Assembly (NCBI GenBank): GCA_011109175.1
Contig: RDEW01000009.1
Location: forward strand, 1,043,652-1,076,651
Origin: Dicyema japonicum
Taxonomy: Eukaryota > Animalia > Dicyemida
Reading direction: 5' to 3'
DNA: 33,000 bases
Positions 4,346-32,350 of the stretch are shown here, one piece after another (positions within the stretch are counted from its first letter, which is position 1; every line of letters starts with the position of its first letter). Position numbers and translations under genes: made by a program. The notes below the pieces were generated by a model. The model made no database searches, was not told the origin of the DNA, and worked only from the letters and a program-made list of their open reading frames with translations.

Positions 4346-4496
4346 CAAATCAACTCAAAAAATAATAAATTTGTTGAAACAAAGTAATACAAAATATTAA
4401 TTAATAATGTTAAAAATTATTAAAATTAAAAAAAATAAAAATTAAATAATAAAATACTAATTTTAACAGTGTTTGTTGTATGAGCAATCCAACTAT

Positions 4497-4817
4497 TTAT
4501 TTATTAACCCCGGATACACCGAGAAAGAAGTTAAAGTAAACAACTAATTAAGTGTATCCAGTTTCCACTTCTACAGAAACAGAGTCCATCCGGAATCAAC
4601 ATAAAAGGTAAAAGACGTCCATAGTTGCAGTTGTGGAAACCCCTCCAGTGGAGTGGGGGAGAGCAAATGATCCTTTTTCGTGCCGGCCTGGCACTGGGCG
4701 CCACCTAGACAGGTGGATCACATGACGCCACTCTAATAGGAAGAGAGAGGAGGAACAGACGATCAAACAGAAACTTAAACCAATTAGCCACGAAGCACCA
4801 CATGGTGCCACGCGGCC
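4497..4817 (-). mobile_element. Short non-autonomous element, family B, copy 1 (structured head/core + LINE-derived tail type 2)
   Basis: Head and core align by eye with 14241-14430 and 22810-22947. The tail (ggatacacttaattagttgtttac...ttctttctcggtg) matches the LINE 3' end at 13790-13860. Confidence 0.75.
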
Positions 4818-4861
4818 AAAATATATTCAGCAATCTAACTAATGGCAACATAATGAGTTTT

Positions 4862-5844: not shown

Positions 5845-7190
5845 GCAATCAAATCAGAAAAAAACAAACTCATGTGACCCAGACTGAATTACTCTTATTC
5901 TACTGAAACACTTGGGCCCAGCATCAATAAATGCATTAACAATCATCTACAACACATTGCTGAACATAAATACCATACCGACTTTATGGAAACTATCAAA
6001 AATTCGTCCAATATTGAAACTGGGAAGACCGAAGAACGATCCCGGCTCTTACAGACCAGTCTCCTTTATATGTGTTTTGTCGAGGATCTTGGAGAAACTG
6101 GTCCTAAAAGTTATTCGCCCTTCTCTCCCACAACCTACATTCCAACATGGCTTCAAGGAAGGATTATCAACAACCTCCTTCCTAACGACATTAATGAAGT
6201 TCATAACTGAAGGACACAAGAACAAGCCAAAACAGGAAAAATCGTCATATGTACAATCGACATTCGAAAAGCTTTCGACTCTGTCCCAAGGAAGATCCTC
6301 ATAAGAAAAATATTTTTGACAAAAATTGATGCACCACTAAAGTTATGGTTAGCAAATTTCGTAAGTGGACGCCGAGGGAAAGTATCCGTCGGAAACAAGA
6401 GTTCCAGATCGGGATTATTACCCAATGGTGTACCCCAAGGATCTCCTCTGTCACCAATCCTTTTTAATTTGTTTTCGAGTGATCTTCCCGTACCTATGAA
6501 TAATAATGACATGCTACTTTCTTATGCCGATGACATAGTTATCGCATCTAGAGACGTAAATGTCGAACATGCTAAAGAAAGACTACAAGGAATACTAAAT
6601 AACATATTTGAATGGTTGTGCGAAAATCGATTAAATGCATGTTCCGAAAAGTCAGCAGTCACTCTATTTACCAAGAATAGAAAGATGGGAACGCAAACAA
6701 TTGATGTCACGTTAAATGGAGTACCTATACCACAAAAGAAATCGCAGAAGATACTGGGGGTAACTTTTGATACTTTCCTCTGCTTCTCATCCCATGTGGA
6801 ATCTATCATATCAACCTGTGCAAAGAAAATCAATTTTATAAAGGCCTTCCGGGACCCTCTAAAAGCAGTATGTCGAGCCAACAATAGGATATGCATGTGC
6901 TGCATGGGGATCTAACCTGTCGGCAACGAACCTAACAAAAATTCAAGAGATCCAGTCAAGAGAAAAAAAATTACTGGAAAAATATACAGATAAAGAAATT
7001 GCCCCCAGAGCACTCGAGTCTATCATAGAGGCAACTGGAGGCAATTTCAGAAGAGGAAAGGAAAAAGACCCCCTTCCGTATAGAAAATGCGTGGGATCAC
7101 GGTCGGAGCATCGAGAAAAAATGGCCCGATTATTGAGAAATGCCGGGATCACCTGAATATTAGTTATTGGTTAAGACGGTGTTTCTTTTG
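5845..7190 (+). mobile_element. 5'-truncated I/Jockey-group LINE: RT domain, internally deleted C-terminus and 3' UTR, inserted in the PRP8 pseudogene
   Basis: ORFs 5912-6304 and 6316-6915 contain WKLSKIRPILK, SYRPVS, QHGFK, DIRKAFDSV, GVPQGSPLSPILFNL, YADDIVI and KILGVTFD, with a frameshift near 6200-6260. Ends RLLRNAGIT* at about 7156. Confidence 0.92.
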
Positions 7191-7371
7191 CTTAAATAAT
7201 AATAATTCCTGGTGGACCAAAATTTGAACCATTGGTTAAAGTATACTAATGTTTAGAAATGATGATTGGAATGAATTTAATAGTATTAATAAAATAATAA
7301 TCCGTCAATCTGTTAGAACAGAATACAAGATTGCATTTCCTTATGTTCCTTACCAAGTACATCTTTCATGG
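7191..7371 (+). pseudogene. PRPF8: PRP8 pseudogene, continuation after the LINE insertions
   Basis: [50 protein letters not shown]; colinear with the upstream fragment. Confidence 0.93.
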
Positions 7372-7420
7372 TTTTTATTCTAGCTAAGACGGTGTTTTTT
7401 GTTCCAATAAATTTAAAATT
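7372..7420 (+). repeat. Isolated LINE 3'-UTR tail (type 1)
   Basis: tttttattctagctaagacggtgttttttgttccaataaattt resembles 14512-14560, the reverse complement of 22675-22720, and 7160-7190. Confidence 0.6.
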
Positions 7421-7824
7421 TTAAATAACTATACTCAATATTTATTAAATATTATGGCAATGATGTGTTGCCATTAGAACACGTAATAAATATTTTAGAA
7501 TGTAAAGCTTAACCTTAATGTCGATGATATTCACTTGACCACTGTTGAGGGAGAAGGTTTTATTATATTTAGGTGTCTCTACATCCACTGGTAGTAGCTT
7601 ATGTTTCTGCTGGATCATCTTTACTTCATCTTTCTGTCTCAGGAATTGTCATTTGTTCACATTAATTGTAATTCAGATCAGTGATTGTACAATTAGATTT
7701 AATATTGTAATAATTTATTTATTGATTGGATTCTTGAGTAGTGACAGCAGCCTCTCTAAATTAATTCATAACTAGTGCGATTTTTTATTAATAATAATTA
7801 ATTTTATTTAGGAAAGAAAAGGAA

Positions 7825-9044: not shown

Positions 9045-9415
9045 TAACAGCCTTTTCATGAGAGACATAATATTTATAGCTCCGCTTAGGCAGGACACAC
9101 ACTTTATTTAAGTAAAGAAGAGTTAATTTTAACTAATCCAAGGAATGATCTTCACTTCTATTTTTCTTTTTTTTTGTGTGGGTCTTTTCTAGACAATCTA
9201 GTTCCGCAGTGAGTATCCACTGATGACGGCGTCACTCGTCAAACCCTATCTGCATCATAGATGTGGAACCTTCCACCAGGTGAACAGCAGCGAGAATCGA
9301 ACCCGTAACTATGCCACTAATGACGGCGTCACTCGTCAAACTCTTTCTGCATCGTAGATGCGTGGAACCTTCCACCAGGTAAACAGCAGCGAGAATCTAA
9401 CCCGTAACTATGGGA
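9045..9415 (-). mobile_element. tRNA-derived SINE family A, copy 1 (divergent subfamily, 5'-truncated, internal ~97-bp tandem duplication)
   Basis: B box GGTTCGATTC on the minus strand. Core ggttccacgcatc...tgacgagtgacgccgtcatcagtg...cactgcggaac and tail aaataaagtgtgtgt.ctgcct are shared with the other three copies. Duplication at 9217-9313 and 9314-9412. Confidence 0.85.
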
Positions 9416-10970: not shown

Positions 10971-11280
10971 AAAAAAACAATGCACTTTCCGAGGTATCTA
11001 TATCATCTATCGCTCCGCACAAACAGAACATACAATTTATTTAATCAAAAAACAGTAATCGTAGCTAATCGATGAGGGAGAATCTAGGAAAGCTCTTCAT
11101 TTCTTTGTTTTTTTTCCTGGGTGTATGTCCTATATATAAGATCCGGTTCCGCAGTGAAATGTTCACTGATAACGGCGTCACTCGTCAAGCCAGAGCATAT
11201 TGATGCGTGGAATTTTCAACCGAATGTACAGTATCCAGATTCGAACTAGTGACCTTAAGGCCTCTCGCCCGACAACCAAT
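10971..11280 (-). mobile_element. tRNA-derived SINE family A, copy 2
   Basis: B box AGTTCGAATC; colinear with 26690-26989 and 32036-32350 over about 300 nt. Confidence 0.88.
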
Positions 11281-12990: not shown

Positions 12991-13789
12991 TCAAAATTAT
13001 GTTTGTGGTTTGACAAAAATTTGATTCAAAGGTAAAACCAAATTAACTAATTCTTGGACCCTCACATTCAAGCACAGTGATCCAGAGGTGGCATTATCGA
13101 ATCCAGCATACACAGAAGATGCTCAATGTCTGGCCGGTATACAAAAGGATACACATCTTCATTCAACCGGGAGACTATTTTGATTCCTGGCGACAAGTTC
13201 TGCCATCGACCTCAGCTTACTGAACAATTTCCTCTGGATTACTTTGATTGGTAACTTGAAGGAAATCAGTCTTTAGCCAACGATGTAACTAACCACGATG
13301 CCGACACCCTAAGACAGGGGTTGGGAACCTTTTAAGCCAAAGAGCTATTTTTTGGCAATTAAAACAATTGAAGAGGATATGATATGAATCTGGAGTACAA
13401 CTTTTTCAATCCATTATATGAATCTGGTTTGCATGTATTGAAGTATGGCACCGGCAATGTCTTCTCCACGTGTTTGACCCTTTAGCGGAAATAATGCTAA
13501 AAGTTATTCTCTAGGAAAGTCTCGAGAAACATAAAGTATTAATAGAGACACCTAATATATTACTAAGTTCATGAAATCTGGACCGTATCCTTAATGTCGC
13601 ATGACTTATCTACTCCGATCAAAATTGCAGAAGCTATTTTAAGGTCATCAACTTGGTGCATCGTCACATGCAAGCGATCTTATTAGTTCTATTCGCATTT
13701 GTTTTTGCGGATAACGGTGTATTTTTAATTTGATTTAAAATCTCTGTTTTATTCTTAAAATTTTGTAATAGTTGTTATTATTTTTATTT

Positions 13790-14175
13790 AATTAATAATC
13801 CCGAAAAGGGAGCACCAAGAAAGAAGGAGTAAACCAACTAATTAAGTGATTCCGGTACGCCTCAACAGGATCGAGAGGTTTTTCCTGTGTTCCTCCAGAG
13901 TACCCACAACTTTCCTGAATAGACGACGATCATCGTTCATTAGAGTTTGAAGAGGGGTGGGAATAGTTGTTGACAATTTTAGAAAACAGGATTTGATGTG
14001 AATGGTTTTCATATTTTTTAAATCTCATGACTGACATGGTTCCAATAAGTGTTTGATAACGAAAGTCAGAAGAAGAGAAAGATTTATCATTCAACATATG
14101 AAAACCCATTAAATCAACGGGGGTTGATTTGTCCCTACGCATTCTCTGGATTCAATGGAACTGCTGTAACCAGAG
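13790..14175 (-). mobile_element. I/Jockey-group LINE 3' fragment (tail type 2) nested in the hAT element
   Basis: C-terminus FRKVVGTLEEHRKNLSILLRRTGIT* is homologous to YRKCVGSRSEHREK..RLLRNAGIT* of the 5845-7190 LINE. Confidence 0.75.
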
Positions 14176-14240
14176 ATCAATTTTTATTAATAATTTAAAT
14201 AGAAATTATTGTTTTCATGGAATGCAAGGAGCTCTTGAAT

Positions 14241-14560
14241 CCACGTGGCTCCAAAGTTAGTGTGGTCCTATGTGGCTACTTGAATTGAAGATTTTGTGTT
14301 TATTACTTCTGTTTCTACTCTTCCCTTTTTGTCTCCAGGGAGCTTGAATTATTAGCGTGCGTCATGTGGTTCACCATCTCTGGTGACCCTAGATATAATC
14401 CTAAATTATATTCAGAAAGAACCATTGGTCAACAACCATCCAGTGGAGTTCCCGATGGGCGGCACTTCCTTCAAGTCCGAGCAAGTGAAGACTGTTGAGG
14501 GAGGCCTGAAATTTTTCATTTTGTCTATGACAGTGTTTTTTGGTTCAATAAATTTAAATT
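14241..14560 (+). mobile_element. Short non-autonomous element, family B, copy 2 (tail type 1), nested in the hAT element
   Basis: Colinear with 22675-22947 (reverse complement). Head shared with 4497-4817. Ends gtgttttttggttcaataaattt. Confidence 0.8.
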
Positions 14561-15639
14561 TATAGACATAGTTGAAGAGCCACAAACAGAATTTATGATT
14601 AAACGAGTAAGATTGTTAAAATTAAAATATTTAATAATTTAAATAAAAATAACAATTTAATTTAAAATAGCATCTAAATATTATATATAGTCTATACATA
14701 AAAACATTTTGGAAGAACATTATTTTGAAAATGTTTTTATTGGAGATCAAAGTAATCATTTGCGATAATTGAAAGAGCCACATAAAAAATCAATGATCCA
14801 CAATGGCTCTAAAATCCACTGTTGCCGACCCCTGCCCTAGGAAATCCTGTTAATAACAAAAAAATCATTTTTTTTAAATTGCTGAAAATTATTTAAAAAA
14901 TTGTTTATCAGCTGAAATTATTAACTATTTTTTATGAGCGTAATATGACCTTGAAAATTTTGTTTCATTCAAAAGTAATCTGTTCTTAAGGGATAGATGT
15001 AATACTAATTATCTTAATAAGAAGTAAGGTCCCTTCACTTTCATAGTTGTACTTTCCAGTCAACGTCACCACATTCACTGTTTCGCTTTTTGTATTTTAT
15101 CACCATTCCGAATCTACAAATACGATAATGCTGTACACTAAAAATTGAAAAAGTACTAGACCCTATATATTAAACTCAAAAATAAAAAACAGAGGATATA
15201 CATTGACTAAGAATGCCACATCAACAAGTCTGCCTTATTCAACCAGTCTGACAGTTAACAAATCAAAGCCGCTAAGCTAATTTAAGAGTGGATTAGTATC
15301 TGGTTATATACTAAACCATTAAGGTCGTGACCAAACACTAACACGTGACCTATACTACCAAATAAATCAAATAATAATTATATAACATTAAATAAAAGAG
15401 ACACGTGACGACAAATGAATTCAGTTAATAAATAACAAATTTAAAGGTCAACGTGGGGCATAGGGTTTTTCTGTTTTATTTTTTAACGCTTCAGACAAAC
15501 TGGAAGGTGTAACCGGGCTGTTTTTGTGAACTCTTTCAACGTGGAGAATGCTGGAATAACGAAATAAGTCATCGGGTAAGCCTCTTCCCTTTATAAATTC
15601 AGAGGGCCTTCCTGGGGTTTGAAATGAAATGGTACTTAA

Positions 15640-18970: not shown

Positions 18971-19955
18971 TCAGTTTTTTAGTCTTCTTTTCTGGGTTAA
19001 TGTGGATGCACTAAGATTACTTGAATTTAACTCTTCACATGTTATTATGGTCCTTGAGCATACATTATGTTGTTCACATGGTATGACTTGAAATTGGGGA
19101 ACTTTAATGACAGTAAACCTATAATTCGTTTGAATAAAAATCCTAATTAATGCAATTGAAGATGAATAATTCAATTATAATGACACGTGGTAATTGTGAG
19201 CTATTAAGAGAAGGGCATGTCTCGATAACATATTTAACTCGATGTTCTTTAAGAGTTCGATACACTATCCTTATGTTCTCATTGCAGGTTGGTAGGCTTG
19301 TTTTCTTTATAAAGACCTCGAAGGGGGTTGTTCCAGCCACAGAACTGTGGAAACTGTGTAGCGTCTCGATAGCTGTGGATTGTAGGTTTTTTTTGCTTAT
19401 CCGTCGCAGGAGTCATGCCTTCTTGTATTGTCGAAGAAATTTATTTTAAAAACAAGACTCATCGACAAATTAAAAGAAAATATATGGGCGTTAGGTGATC
19501 TCAGCCTCCTTAAGCAGTCATCTCACCTTTCTTCAGTGTTCGTCCCGAGATCCATATAGTAGTGCATGACTTTTCTGTGCTTGTAGATAACAAGTTATTC
19601 TCTTACCGTTTGCGGGATCAGATCTTGCGTGTCTTATCTATTTATTTTTTTAGCCCAGGGTCACTAAGTTTGAAAAAGTGTCATTTGCTAACTAAGTCCT
19701 CCCGAACTGACAAAAGGAAGGCATAACTTGTTTTTGACAAGGTCCTTTAGTGCTCTTCTCATTTGACACAAAGTCCGGTAGTTTTGAATTTGAGGAGTTT
19801 TAAGTCCGATAATGTCCGGCCTCTCCCATGAATAAGAAAGAGTCCCAAAGGACAATGATTTTTTAAATGCAACCCCGAATCCACGTTCTTCAAATACAAA
19901 TTGAAGAACTTGACAACTGCAGAAGTCACATAAACCAACGTAACATCGGATCCTA
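18971..19955 (-). pseudogene. Possible disrupted host gene with a TBC/Rab-GAP-like motif
   Basis: MLRWFM...IIVLWDSFLFMG (about 19830-19950) resembles the TBC motif RWF...R+WD.FL.EG. Short GT-AG segments lie downstream, but I could not build a clean ORF. Confidence 0.3.
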
Positions 19956-19958
19956 GAC

Positions 19959-20132
19959 GTTAGCCATTAGAATATGTCCGGACCAAAACCTGAGGGAAAT
20001 TTTACTGATAGTGTGTCGCATGGCCGACTGATTACGCATGGGCAGACGGTTACATTTTTTTACCTTGAAAGGTCAATCAAACATCTTCTATTATCAGAAT
20101 TTTATTTTTTAGGGTGGCAACCCTAAATTTCT
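19959..20132 (+). repeat. ~172-bp diverged direct repeat, copy 1
   Basis: Colinear with 20601-20770 (gttagccatt...ggcaaccctaaatttct). Confidence 0.9.
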
Positions 20133-20625
20133 GGTGTCCAGACATTTGGCCAACAGATATTCGACCGACAGAAGTTAGGCCGACAGGACATTTGGCCGAT
20201 AGGACATTCTGGTTTTAAAATTCAGAGAAAAAATTCAAAATAAAAACATTTACTTAAAGGTTATGAGAAAGCGCAGTCAAAAATTCTACTGGAGTGTAAT
20301 CATCATATTTTTCAATAATACTGTTTATCCTTTTGTTCACATCCTAGTACTTCTTTACTTGTCTTATTGTTATTCCGGCCATCACTTGTACTACTGTGAG
20401 TTCCCACTCCGACTGTTCTTTCGTATTTTTGCAACAAGCCGACAAACGGTTGGATGCTTTATAGACACTCTTTGTGAAAAAGATCTGTGCCATCCTTCAA
20501 GTGAATTCGTAGTTCTTGGGAGGCCTTATGCCTGTCTGTCGTGTACATTACACATTTCCAAACTAAACAATAGTGTCGGCTAATGTCCTGTCGACCAAAT
20601 GTTAGCCATTCAAATATGTACGGAC
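20133..20625 (-). mobile_element. Internally deleted MULE/Mutator element with subterminal repeat arrays
   Basis: Minus strand reads NVHDR..GLPRTTNSLEGWHRSFSQRVSIKHPTV..LVAKIRK...FLTALSHNL, a MULE transposase C-terminus. gacatttggccga-type repeats at 20140-20208 are inverted at 20574-20602. Confidence 0.85.
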
Positions 20626-20770
20626 CAAAACCTGAAGAAAATTTGACTGATAGTGTGTCACATGGCCGACTGGCTACGCATGGGTGGTTACATTTTTTAC
20701 CTTGAAATGTCAAATCAAATATCTTTTATTATTAGAATTTTATTTTTTATGGTGGCAACCCTAAATTTCT
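20601..20770 (+). repeat. ~172-bp diverged direct repeat, copy 2
   Basis: Colinear with 19959-20132. Confidence 0.9.
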
Positions 20771-21444
20771 AGCGTGTTTCAGAATACTTTTTGTAGTGGC
20801 TACTTACAGAGGTTTTGTGAAAGATAGTTCGGAGTATGAAAGACGTTTTGCAAAATAAATTCCCTGAACATCTTGCGAGGCAAGGAATATATATGCTAGC
20901 TGAGAAGATTTTTTAGTATAATTAATGAAAGGTATTGTACATTTTTTATTATCAAAAGGATGGAGAGCACGGCAAAAGCCCTACACGAGTGTCCACATGG
21001 AGTCAACTACAGCGATATTTTACTGTTAAGAATGACATTATGGAGTCAACTACAGTAAGGTCCCTTAATTGGCACAATTAACAGCCAAGTTTGTAAATTT
21101 TCGAATGCCTTAAAAGTTTTTATTTCCTTTATTTGTAGATTGGAGATATAAACCACCACGTTTTTGCTTCTTGGCCCAATGGAAGATTAGACGCTAAGCT
21201 TCGTATGTACGCACGTTCCGGAATTTGCTCCCATATTCCTCGTAAACCCAATATGAAGTATTCATTACATATTATTTCTTGGAGAGCTGTCTCTCAGCGA
21301 AAGGATCTTAACAGTCATTGACATATTTAGTAGACTGGTTTTTTATTTTAACAATTAAAAAATAAGTTTTAGTTTTTTTTGTTCATTTGGCTGGTAAATG
21401 TACGGAATTAACGATAATCTTACTAAAAATTACTTTTTAATTTA

Positions 21445-22674: not shown

Positions 22675-22947
22675 AATTCATTGAACCAAAAAACACCCTT
22701 ATAGCCAGAATGAAAAAAAATCAGGTGATCCCGGCCTCCCTCAGCAGTCTTGGAATGCTCGGACTTGAAGGAAGTGCCTTCCAGAGGAACTCCTCTGGAT
22801 GGTTGTTGACTAATGGTCATTTTTGAATATAATATAGGATTATATCTGGCCCCCAGAGATGGTTAACCAAATGACGCACGCCAATAAATAATAAATCACC
22901 TCCCTAGAGCCAAAAGGGAAGAGGAGGAACAGAAGAATCAAACATAT
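22675..22947 (-). mobile_element. Short non-autonomous element, family B, copy 3 (5'-truncated, tail type 1)
   Basis: Reverse complement is colinear with 14290-14560. Tail encodes RLLREAGIT* (gccgggatcacctga, identical to 7142-7156). Confidence 0.82.
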
Positions 22948-26689: not shown

Positions 26690-26989
26690 GGTCGGATAGC
26701 GCAGTGTAACGGTTGCCGGCAAGAGGCCTTAAGGTCGCTAGTACGAATCCCGATACTGTACATTCGGTTAAAGGTTCCACGCATCAATACGCGGTCATCA
26801 GTGAACTTTTCACTGCGGAATCAGATTGTCTCTATAGGACATACACCCAAAAAAAACAAAGAAGTGAAGAGCATTTCTCGATTTTCCGTCATTGATTAGC
26901 TATGATAACTGTTCTTTGCTTAAATAAAGTGTGTGTTCTGCCTGAAGGTACGATACCTGATATGTCTCCTCAGAAAGTGCATTGTTGTT
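26690..26989 (+). mobile_element. tRNA-derived SINE family A, copy 3
   Basis: A box TAGCGCAGTG at +8; B-box-like GTACGAATCC; shared core (partly deleted) and tail. Confidence 0.88.
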
Positions 26990-27140
26990 AATTGGTAGGA
27001 AATTTGTCATCAGAAAAAAATGCCTCAAATACCGAGGGTGCCCCATAGCCAGGGTGTGCTCCAAACTGAGGTCAGACTGTAGTAAAAATTTGTAGGCCCA
27101 TAACACCCCCCATTAGTATATAATGGATGATAGTCATGGA

Positions 27141-27408
27141 CAATATTATTTCCAAATGCATAAGGACAACCACCATCATGTTTTAATTGTTGATCACATG
27201 CAAATACAGTTTCTTTAAGCATATTGTGTCACATGATGGCATGATGCCTATGGGCAACCTGTTTTTTTCGTGTTCAATATTATTTCCAAATGCATAAGGA
27301 CAACCACCATCATGTTTTAATTGTTGATCACATGCAAATACAGTTTCTTTAAGCATATTGTGTCACATGATGGCATGATGCCTATGGGCAACCTGTTTTT
27401 TACGTGTT
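27141..27408. repeat. Near-perfect tandem duplication, 134-bp unit x2
   Basis: Unit starts caatattatttccaaatgc at 27141 and 27275. Confidence 0.95.
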
Positions 27409-27539: not shown

Positions 27540-28155
27540 TTCGAAAAATATATTCGGCGCATTTTCCTTTCTGTAGCACAACGCAATATCCCTGAGCGCG
27601 TTTGGATATCCTTATGGATAGCGCTTACATCACTAGCCATTCCAGAGGAGGGCGCCTGCCTTCTTTCCTCGCAATATCCCTGAGCGCGTTTGGATATCCT
27701 TATGGATAGCGCTTACATCACTAGCCATTCCAGAGGAGGGCGCCTGCCTTTTCTTCTGTAGTACCTTCTCTGTAGCTTTTCGCTACAGGGGGCATCTTGA
27801 ATGGCTCGCCCTGTGTCCTTCCTCGCCACAGTTCACGCACTTGAGAGATCTGACTTTTGATTGGCAGGCCTTCCGCGAACTTGGACCTCCGCAATTTAGA
27901 TCATTTCTGCCTCTGCTCTAGCAAAGCCTGACCTTCATGGTCAAGAGTCTTCTCCCCTTTCTTGTGGAGTTTTTCTTGATGTGTTCGACTACATTATCAT
28001 CCACGAAGTCCAGAGGAACTCCGAAGACTAGCAGTATTGAATCCAAAGCCTTAGGAATGACCCGTGGCATGTTATGTGCCCCGGGCCCAAAAGGTACCTT
28101 AGCATTGACCTTAGCTTTGAAAGCTGACGAGTCGTCCTTTAAAGCATCTCTTAAG
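27540..28155 (-). mobile_element. I/Jockey-group LINE ORF1 (gag-like zinc knuckle) fragment
   Basis: NCGGPSSRKAC and KCVNCGEEGHRASHSRCP are CCHC-type knuckles. Confidence 0.75.
27582..27750. repeat. Tandem duplication, 88-bp period x2
   Basis: cgcaatatccctgagcgcg...cgcctgcctt at 27582 and 27670. Confidence 0.95.
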
Positions 28156-32035: not shown

Positions 32036-32350
32036 GACTGTGTGGCGCAGTGTGACATTTTGCCGGCAAAAGGCCTGAATTTCGAATCTGGATATTGTAC
32101 ATTTCGAATGAAGGTTCCACGCATCAATATGCTTTGGCTTGAGGAGTGACGTCGTCATCAGTGAACATTTCACTGCGGAACCGGATCGTCTAAGAAAGAC
32201 ATTCACCCAAGAAAAAGAAAAAACCAAAGAAGTAAAGAGCTTTCCTTAATTCTCGTTCATCAATTAGCTGTGATAACTGTTCTTTGCTTAAAATATAGTG
32301 TGTGTTCTGCCTGAGACGAGCGATGGCTGATATGACTCCTCGGAAAGTGC
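32036..32350 (+). mobile_element. tRNA-derived SINE family A, copy 4
   Basis: A box TGGCGCAGTG at +8; TTCGAATC; shared core and tail. Confidence 0.88.

Follow-up and report, generated by a model that had tools for sequence, protein, structure and literature searches.

A conserved RNA fold at the 5' end of a LINE and in its abundant non-autonomous derivatives in Dicyema japonicum

The locus

The window is the whole 33,000-nt stretch of Dicyema japonicum DNA analysed here (contig RDEW01000009.1). It holds copies of a structured RNA module, the family B elements that carry them and pieces of a partner LINE. The features are listed with the source of each call. Copy 1 is broken down into its parts, given in the sense direction.

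4495..4817, minus: whole non-autonomous element, copy 1 (subfamily B1); genome searches, target site duplication (TSD) from the sequence
4663..4736, minus: 5' RNA module of copy 1 (B1); sequence, match to covariance model CM R1 of 73 bits, E 1e-13; exactly the B1a consensus
4736-4730, minus: leader of copy 1, TTAGAGT; sequence
4729-4724, minus: P1 5' strand, GGCGTC; sequence
4723-4722, minus: AT of the AT(G); sequence
4721-4715, minus: P2 5' strand, GTGATCC; sequence
4714-4703, minus: P3 hairpin, ACCT GTCT AGGT (L3 at 4710-4707); sequence
4702-4697, minus: linker/P1', GGCGCC; sequence
4696-4694, minus: J1/4, CAG; sequence
4693-4681, minus: P4 hairpin, TGCC AGGCC GGCA; sequence
4680-4674, minus: A-rich J4/2, CGAAAAA; sequence
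4673-4667, minus: P2 3' strand, GGATCAT; sequence
5912..7205, plus: 5'-truncated copy of the partner LINE, with reverse transcriptase (RT) ORF fragments and then the LINE 3' end; Pfam RVT_1 1.4e-16 and 2.6e-05, nhmmer, sequence
7369..7427, plus: second, isolated LINE/B2 3'-tail fragment; nhmmer, sequence
13080..13168, plus: fourth module copy, old and B3-like, P1 GGCATT/GATGCT; nhmmer match and alignment
14240..14562, plus: whole non-autonomous element, copy 2 (B2); genome searches, alignment
14352..14429, plus: 5' RNA module of copy 2 (B2, old), P1' decayed to GACCCT; sequence, CM match 88.7 bits
22662..22951, minus: non-autonomous element, copy 3 (B2), head largely diverged; sequence, searches
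22809..22884, minus: 5' RNA module of copy 3 (B2, decayed), P1' GGGGCC and a 2-nt deletion; sequence, CM match 67.9 bits

In the copy 1 element a head of ~80 nt is followed by the LINE 5' module and a 3' tail (...GGGGTTAATAAATAAATA). Its TSD is 14 nt long (4827-4840 and 4481-4494; 12 of the 14 positions are identical), and there are ~9 extra nt at the 5' junction. A sequence-only reading of this DNA had reported that three diverged copies keep the same pairings. Reading both strands confirms this: P2 is GTGGTTC/GAACCAT in copy 2 and TTGGTTA/TGACCAT in copy 3, and both have P3 ACCA/TGGT and an A/U-rich P4. The copy at 13080..13168 was absent from that account.

In the partner LINE the RVT_1 region found by Pfam covers 5912-6915. 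The LINE 3' end (about 7120-7205) matches positions 250-322 of B2 in nhmmer. Lone fragments at 13786-13872 (minus) and 19438-19525 (minus) match just the 3' ~85 nt of B1 or B2, and are probably 5'-truncated LINE or SINE insertions.

The window has other repeats. Family A occurs in both orientations (9141-9412, 11024-11269, 26718-26940 and 32103-32292). It is probably a tRNA-derived SINE, since it holds the reverse complement of a tRNA B-box-like sequence, GGTTCGATTCTC (e.g. 9296-9309). It also carries CTGATGACGGCGTCAC...GTCAAAC, superficially like hammerhead boxes, for which Rfam gave no match in the window at gathering score. There are local tandem duplications at 27134-27401 and 27582-27757 (134 nt twice at 98% identity and 88 nt twice at 97%). 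A segment of ~180 nt is repeated at 19959-20137 and 20601-20775, the copies being 642 nt apart with 83-89% identity.

The parent LINE and its non-autonomous derivatives

Repeat family B was followed through the window's own genome (67.5 Mb); the copy numbers given here are first-look candidates. B1 is young and ~317 bp long, with copies 94-97% identical and more than 2000 candidates. B2 is old and ~340 bp long, with ~80% identity among copies and ~520 candidates; it includes copies 2 and 3. B3 is a third subfamily with ~800 candidates. Copies of family B have TSDs of 8-14 bp, end in an (AATA/TAAA)-type tail and carry varying numbers of additional nucleotides where the 5' junction lies. These are the marks of retroposed, non-autonomous elements.

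It is worth considering where the module comes from. The B4 and B5 lineages start just a few nt upstream of the motif. When 10 B4 copies and locus L080 are aligned, and likewise 7 near-identical B5a copies, the shared sequence sets in abruptly at its 5' side with (T)TAGCGTG(G)CGTCATGTGG, and the DNA upstream of it is unrelated. The ATG within what had been drawn as J1/2-P2 opens an ORF, which in locus L094 reads MWLTGCNNSGGTQNAPKAFPKRAISSFPPGVHVAPGRRITGLATVSRIRN (...SRIRN). This ATG-initiated ORF runs into, and overlaps, the frame of L080, RIRNLHKSKDQISVIQLNVNGIKGKI...LIQESKL. The L080 frame resembles Exo_endo_phos clusters. The endonuclease call is based on protein-atlas features and on motifs read by eye; a Pfam search with the 63-aa endonuclease-like fragment gave no match. 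Downstream of the endonuclease-like frame there is an RVT_1 match (3.4e-15). The frame of B5a is open for at least 37 codons, and in the B4 leader an in-frame TAG shuts the frame upstream. The LINE ORF begins 13-14 nt from the 5' end, which leaves a 5' UTR of 13 nt.

The module therefore originates in a LINE and overlaps its coding sequence. Given the sharp 5' boundary, the ATG-initiated ORF that leads into an endonuclease-like frame and the RVT_1 match downstream, it corresponds to nt ~8-85 of an autonomous non-LTR LINE of RTE-like type, and covers the ATG and the first ~26 codons. The motif had been placed 85-115 nt inside the element. That is right for the window copies but not for the parent LINE, where the motif is the 5' terminus. 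Three further lineages, B6a-c, are known from pattern matches.

The B elements are 317-340 bp long and lack an RT ORF. Their 5' part is homologous to B4 and B5a from nt 1 to at least nt 120, and their 3' tail is common to the RT-bearing fragment at 5912-7205. B1, B2 and B3 are internally deleted, non-autonomous derivatives of the LINE and are SIDE/SINE-like. With the motif at the LINE 5' end and the LINE 3' end matching the B2 tail, each is made up of an extra head followed by LINE nt 1 to ~130 and, last, the LINE 3' tail.

The extra heads precede the LINE 5' module and are 55-125 nt long. The B1 head (TAGCCGCGTGGCGCCATGTGG...) is a partial duplicate of the LINE 5' end. The heads of B1 and B2, such as 4738-4817 (minus) and 14240-14351 (plus), open with a near-copy of the LINE 5' end (TAGCCGCGTGGCGCCATGTGG vs TTAGCGTGGCGTCATGTGG), which hints that an element must carry these first ~20 nt at its physical 5' end, either as a promoter/initiator or for 5'-end recognition. 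A head derived from a tRNA, 5S RNA or snRNA was considered and rejected: no convincing A or B boxes are seen, and the head resembles the LINE 5' end instead. The B1 and B2 heads can form a 7-bp stem, UAGCCRC/GUGGCUA, and the B2 head seems to carry two partial repeats of the LINE 5' end.

The subfamilies differ in what remains of the ORF. The B2 consensus keeps the ATG and a 44-codon ORF, MWFTISGGARYNPKLYPKRTISQQPSRGVPPGRHFLQVRACEDC*, that shares the LINE N-terminus. B1 has ATG TGA and B3 is without an ATG. A single copy at G000:C113:134979-135037 (plus), found as a pattern match, is intermediate. It has a P2 of the GUGGUCC type, a short P3, the linker GGCGCU and a P4 (AGCC-UGGCU-GGCU) like that of B1 and B3. 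It may be a relic of a LINE lineage ancestral to B1 and B3.

Helices P2, P3 and P4

A covariance model of P2, P3 and P4 (CM R1) was used to align 86 genomic instances from at least 8 lineages. For these helices 89.6% of cells pair, and sliding the partners lowers this to 33-56%. The helices score 0.25 for covariation, against at most 0.075, and 0 of 500 shuffles reached that score. Double changes are seen at 6 of 7 P2 pairs, 1 of 4 P3 pairs and 8 of 8 P4 pairs. The compensatory pattern proposed from the window is real, and far stronger than three copies could show.

P2 is a perfect 7-bp helix in every lineage consensus and has different sequences:

B1: GUGAUCC / GGAUCAU
B2: GUGGUUC / GGACCAU
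B3: UGGAUCC / GGAUCCA
B4: GUGGCUC / GAGCCAU
B5a: GUGGUUC / GAACCAU
B6a,b: GUGGUCU / GGACCAU
B6c: GUGGUCC / GGACCAU

Cognate P2 strands form 7.0 pairs and non-cognate strands 5.9. P3 occurs as ACCU/AGGU, ACCA/UGGU, ACCG/UGGU, CCU/AGG, CCGGA/UCUGG and CCAG/CUGG. P4 has at least 5 unrelated stems across the lineages:

UGCC/GGCA
GAUAUAAU/AUUAUAUC
GAUAUAGU/ACUAUAUC
AAUGCU/AGCAUU
GGUGCA/UGCACC and AGUGCG/CGCACU

One can imagine a scenario with no function at the RNA level. The conservation would then reflect an N-terminal peptide (MW.T..SGGA....KR.I), a DNA-level internal promoter, or both, and the helices would be incidental. The region is indeed coding in the LINEs, where the linker GGCGCY encodes Gly-Ala and the A-run Lys/Arg, and the first ~20 nt are duplicated where the non-autonomous elements begin, as would suit a promoter or initiator. 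However, paired synonymous sites change together. In LINE P4, GCA/AAT becomes GCG/AAC between B6a and B6c, and in LINE P2 the Arg codons AGG/AGA covary with C/U. Paired positions also change together at the cost of the amino acid: codon 3 goes between F, L and S with T/A, and in P4 a Gly>Ser change accompanies Pro>Leu. The P4 loop C-N-U-A-A is constant in the LINEs while the residue it encodes is Leu, Pro or Arg. Compensation of both kinds and the constant loop mean that selection acts on P2, P3 and P4 as RNA and that the helices are not a by-product of coding. B1 and B3, which are non-coding, keep all the helices in their consensus. Together with the pairing and shuffling statistics above, this makes the scenario very unlikely. 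We argue that a real RNA fold of P2, P3 and P4, kept by compensatory evolution, is strongly supported.

Other approaches say less about the fold. Single-sequence minimum free energy folding is uninformative, since the nested predictions differ between lineages and the z-scores lie between -1.9 and +0.1. An outer helix that pairs the leader with sequence 3' of P2' was rejected; B1 and B5a have it, but it is not kept by B2 or B3. Relatives in other species were sought by scanning metagenomes with GTGGCGTCATGTGGYYY, filtering with CM R1 and reading by eye, which returned chance matches only.

The pseudoknot and the ribozyme question

In every lineage consensus the 5'-UTR hexamer GGCGUC finds its complement in the linker that follows P3 (GGCGCC, GACGCC, GGCGCU or GGCGUC; 5-6 bp). 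This is P1, the pairing that would make the fold a pseudoknot. It had been described as part of a covariation-supported pseudoknot, and that description does not hold for P1. Although 92.5% of its cells pair, 223 of 500 shuffles do as well, and there is no covariation. The P1 changes are all one-sided wobble changes (U-G/U-A, G-C/G-U), and every non-cognate combination of strands pairs as well as the cognate one. When the sequence is shuffled with its composition preserved, chance yields a helix of at least 6 bp in 4-11% of cases if any register is allowed and in 1-4% if the register must be HDV-like.

Several observations support P1 indirectly. It is the sole column-consistent helix picked by RNAalifold. 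The leader next to it varies (UUAGCGU, UUAGAGU, UUUGAU, AAACGU) while GGCGUC is constant. The Gly-Ala codons of the linker are GGC GCY only. The A-rich strand ahead of P2' is suited to forming a minor-groove triplex with a GC-rich stem. P1 had been called good in copy 1 and weak in copies 2 and 3. The first part stands, but the weakness is not a trait of the subfamily: the B2 consensus has GGCGCC, and P1 is weak in these two copies because they have decayed. From the complementarity we judge the P1 pairing, an H-type pseudoknot with HDV-like topology, to be plausible, and we lean slightly towards it.

Two other pairings of the leader were noted. An alternative P1 through the leader, AGCGU/GCGCU, was rejected; it works in B4 only and not in B5a, B1 or B2. 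In LINE and SINE 5' ends (loci L092:80-167:- and L104:118-195:+, and pattern matches) the leader is also complementary to the P4 loop, as UUAG/CUAA in B2, B4 and B5 and as UUAA/UUAA in B6a. B6b and B6c reach just 3 bp. This complementarity could be a tertiary pairing or could be chance in A/U-rich sequence.

The next question is whether the module is a non-canonical HDV-like ribozyme. In such a ribozyme P1 and P2 would form a nested pseudoknot with the C at the start of J4/2 as the general acid. Cleavage 5' of GGCGUC would leave a structured 5' end without a cap, and this end would support translation of the LINE ORF. The strand order P1-P2-P3-P3'-P1'-P4-J4/2-P2' is present, with P2, P3 and P4 supported comparatively, and the junction lengths fit. 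The 5' terminus of endonuclease/RT LINEs is a known site for ribozymes (PMC3774820, PMC3185411). P1 is compatible in every lineage, and the synonymous positions of the Gly-Ala codons GGC GCY never break it. Its first pair is G•U in B4, B5a and B6a-c (GGCGUC/GGCGCU; GCGUC/GGCGU), as at the cleavage site of HDV. The window's subfamilies differ: B1 has G-C there, and B2 has U·C, which shortens its P1 to 5 bp. The earlier drawing is supported in its strand order and in its analogy with retroelement 5' ends; P1.1, covariation of P1 and membership in the HDV-like family are not supported.

P3 is 3-6 bp long and L3 is 4-11 nt long without a conserved base (GUCU, UCUC, UUUC, UACUG; 9-11 nt and unrelated in B4 and B6). 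The proposed P1.1, AG with CT, is not a consistent pairing. J1/4 is CAG, A/AGA, CAA, CAAA or G depending on the lineage, and L3 offers complements of 2 nt only, at shifting positions. J4/2 by lineage is:

B1 CGAAAAA; B2 C/CAAAAA; B3 UCAAGA
B4 UUCCAAAAA; B6a GCGGAAAA
B5a UAAAAA; B6b UAGGAAAA

It starts with C-N-A-A in most lineages (CGAA, CCAA or CUAA after P4), which favours a ribozyme, but the C is not invariant. It is lost in the young B6b through a synonymous CGG>AGG change and is paired or absent in B5a. In both of these the C becomes available only if the closing P4 pair is opened.

The ends of the copies bear on cleavage. A leader of 6-8 nt (TTAGCGT or (TT)AAACGT) lies upstream of P1 in 18 of 18 LINE 5' ends examined. 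BLAST found no start at G1 among the 40 B4 matches, and the same is true of B1 (0 of 424 exact 20-mers with a foreign upstream triplet). Rfam searches, run on the window at gathering score and on the B1, B2, B4 and B5 sequences at E<=10, gave no match to HDV_ribozyme, CPEB3 or drz-* models. The matches obtained (RMST, Six3os1, BSR0626, RT-19) are all chance. With no Rfam match, a hypervariable P3 and L3, a J4/2 C that is not invariant and copies that start 6-8 nt upstream, membership in the HDV-like family is not upheld, and we regard an HDV-like ribozyme as distinctly unlikely.

A ribozyme of another or a new class might instead cut ahead of the leader, at the true boundary. Its helices would be the same but its core a different one, and it might be aided by flanking TSD nucleotides like the twister T-variants of Perere-3. 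Independent insertions all show the same sharp 5' boundary, and there is precedent for LINE 5' ends that carry ribozymes of different classes (PMC8501958). The leader complementarity to the P4 loop in some lineages (UUAG/UUAA with CUAA/UUAA) would fit as well. However, an internal promoter explains a sharp 5' end equally. The same Rfam scans gave no covariance-model match at E<=10 to twister, hammerhead, hatchet or pistol, and no unpaired core nucleotides are conserved besides the linker and the A-run. We consider this scenario very improbable.

Interpretation

The sequence-only reading had allowed for another functional pseudoknot as its alternative, and of its readings this fits best. We argue that the module is probably a non-catalytic, cis-acting 5' RNA module of an APE-type LINE that has been copied by non-autonomous derivatives. 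It is 75-90 nt long and consists of the leader of 6-8 nt, the 5'-UTR hexamer GGCGUC, the AUG and the 7-bp P2. P2 closes a three-way junction made of the variable P3, the linker GGCGCY, P4 (with the loop CNUAA in the LINEs) and the A-rich strand. If GGCGUC pairs with GGCGCY, which is plausible, the junction would become an H-type pseudoknot with HDV-like topology. The autonomous LINE would have a single ORF that runs from an AP-endonuclease-like domain to the RT, in an RTE-like layout, and would mobilise the B elements in trans, giving them TSDs. A candidate role for the module is the presentation of the start codon on an almost leaderless RNA. It might also, or instead, be the place where the element's protein binds or recognises the 5' end.

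In the RNAs that were copied into the genome the module would not act as a 5'-processing ribozyme. The leader is kept and none of the copies examined starts at G1, which argues that productive RNAs are not processed by cleavage at the P1 site. It must be noted that some features run against a non-catalytic module. HDV-like retrotransposon ribozymes show the same strand order, a J1/2 of 2 nt, an A-rich J4/2 and a location at a LINE 5' end. All autonomous lineages open P1 with a G•U pair, and J4/2 mostly starts with C-N-A-A. A ribozyme could act on mRNAs other than the retrotransposition templates.

A bolder reading is a new functional RNA class. This might be a self-cleaving RNA that has HDV-like topology and another core. 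It might also be a pseudoknot embedded at the start codon and required in cis by an APE-type LINE, either to be translated without a cap or leader or to have its 5' end recognised by the LINE's own protein. Either way, the non-autonomous parasites would have to copy the module in order to be mobilised. We think this unlikely. If true, it would mean a 5' cis-requirement of a kind that has not been established among APE-type LINEs.

In R2, L1Tc and Perere-3, the 5' ends of LINEs carry structured or catalytic RNAs that control 5'-end formation and translation, and few are known elsewhere. Here a fold is kept within the first 26 codons of an endonuclease/RT LINE and is faithfully retained by very successful non-autonomous elements. 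Its retention in the abundant B1, B3 and B2 points to a 5' cis-requirement for mobilisation by an APE-type LINE. The lineages, at least 8 with different P2, P3 and P4, are natural "mutants" for separating catalytic, translational and protein-binding roles. The case also shows that an HDV-like drawing can arise without an HDV core.

Comparison with known systems

To our knowledge, the known retrotransposon ribozymes cleave at or upstream of the end of the element. The R2 ribozyme leaves an uncapped, structured 5' end that has been reported to support translation. HDV-like self-cleaving ribozymes occur at the 5' ends of non-LTR elements such as R2, L1Tc (Pr77/L1TcRz) and RTE-type elements (PMC3774820, PMC3185411, PMC4908430). 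The module resembles them in its position at a LINE 5' terminus, its strand order, its variable P4, a P1 of 5-6 bp that starts with G (G•U in the autonomous lineages), the C and then A's before P2', and its presence in both autonomous and non-autonomous elements. In R2 and HDV the most conserved block is P1.1-P3-L3, with a 3-bp P3 and a conserved L3 of ~7 nt that has the U...G reverse wobble and the C's for P1.1 (PMC3774820). L3 and J4/2 form the catalytic core of HDV-like ribozymes (PMC4908430). In contrast, P3 and L3 of the module are not conserved, P1.1 is inconsistent, and J4/2 is 6-9 nt long with a C that is not invariant. In the module, 6-8 nt that belong to the element are always kept 5' of the putative cleavage site. 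The module is coding and includes the AUG, and it has no Rfam match.

The B elements are like the SIDEs of R2 and R1 (PMC3414825), and like the NARTc/RIME-type partners of L1Tc/ingi, in joining a LINE 5' module to a LINE 3' end. They are also alike in spreading by the LINE machinery and in having TSDs and variable 5' junctions. They differ in carrying a head of 55-125 nt that is a partial duplicate of the LINE 5' end, in copy numbers of hundreds to thousands, and in having a partner that is APE-type and not R2-type.

The twister T-variants of Perere-3 in Schistosoma mansoni (PMC8501958) are likewise structured RNAs with which an endonuclease/RT LINE begins; that LINE too lacks a long 5' UTR, and its TSDs abut the element. 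Unlike them, the module lacks the conserved twister nucleotides, has no Rfam twister match and has another arrangement of helices.

The last system to compare is the 5' pseudoknot of R2 RNA. This protein-binding motif is a conserved structure near the 5' end and the ORF start, and it is proposed to be bound by the element's protein. The module is likewise a conserved structured region near the 5' end and the ORF start of a non-LTR element. The endonuclease of R2 is of another type and the two RNAs have no known sequence relation; the module may likewise serve as a binding site for the protein of its element.
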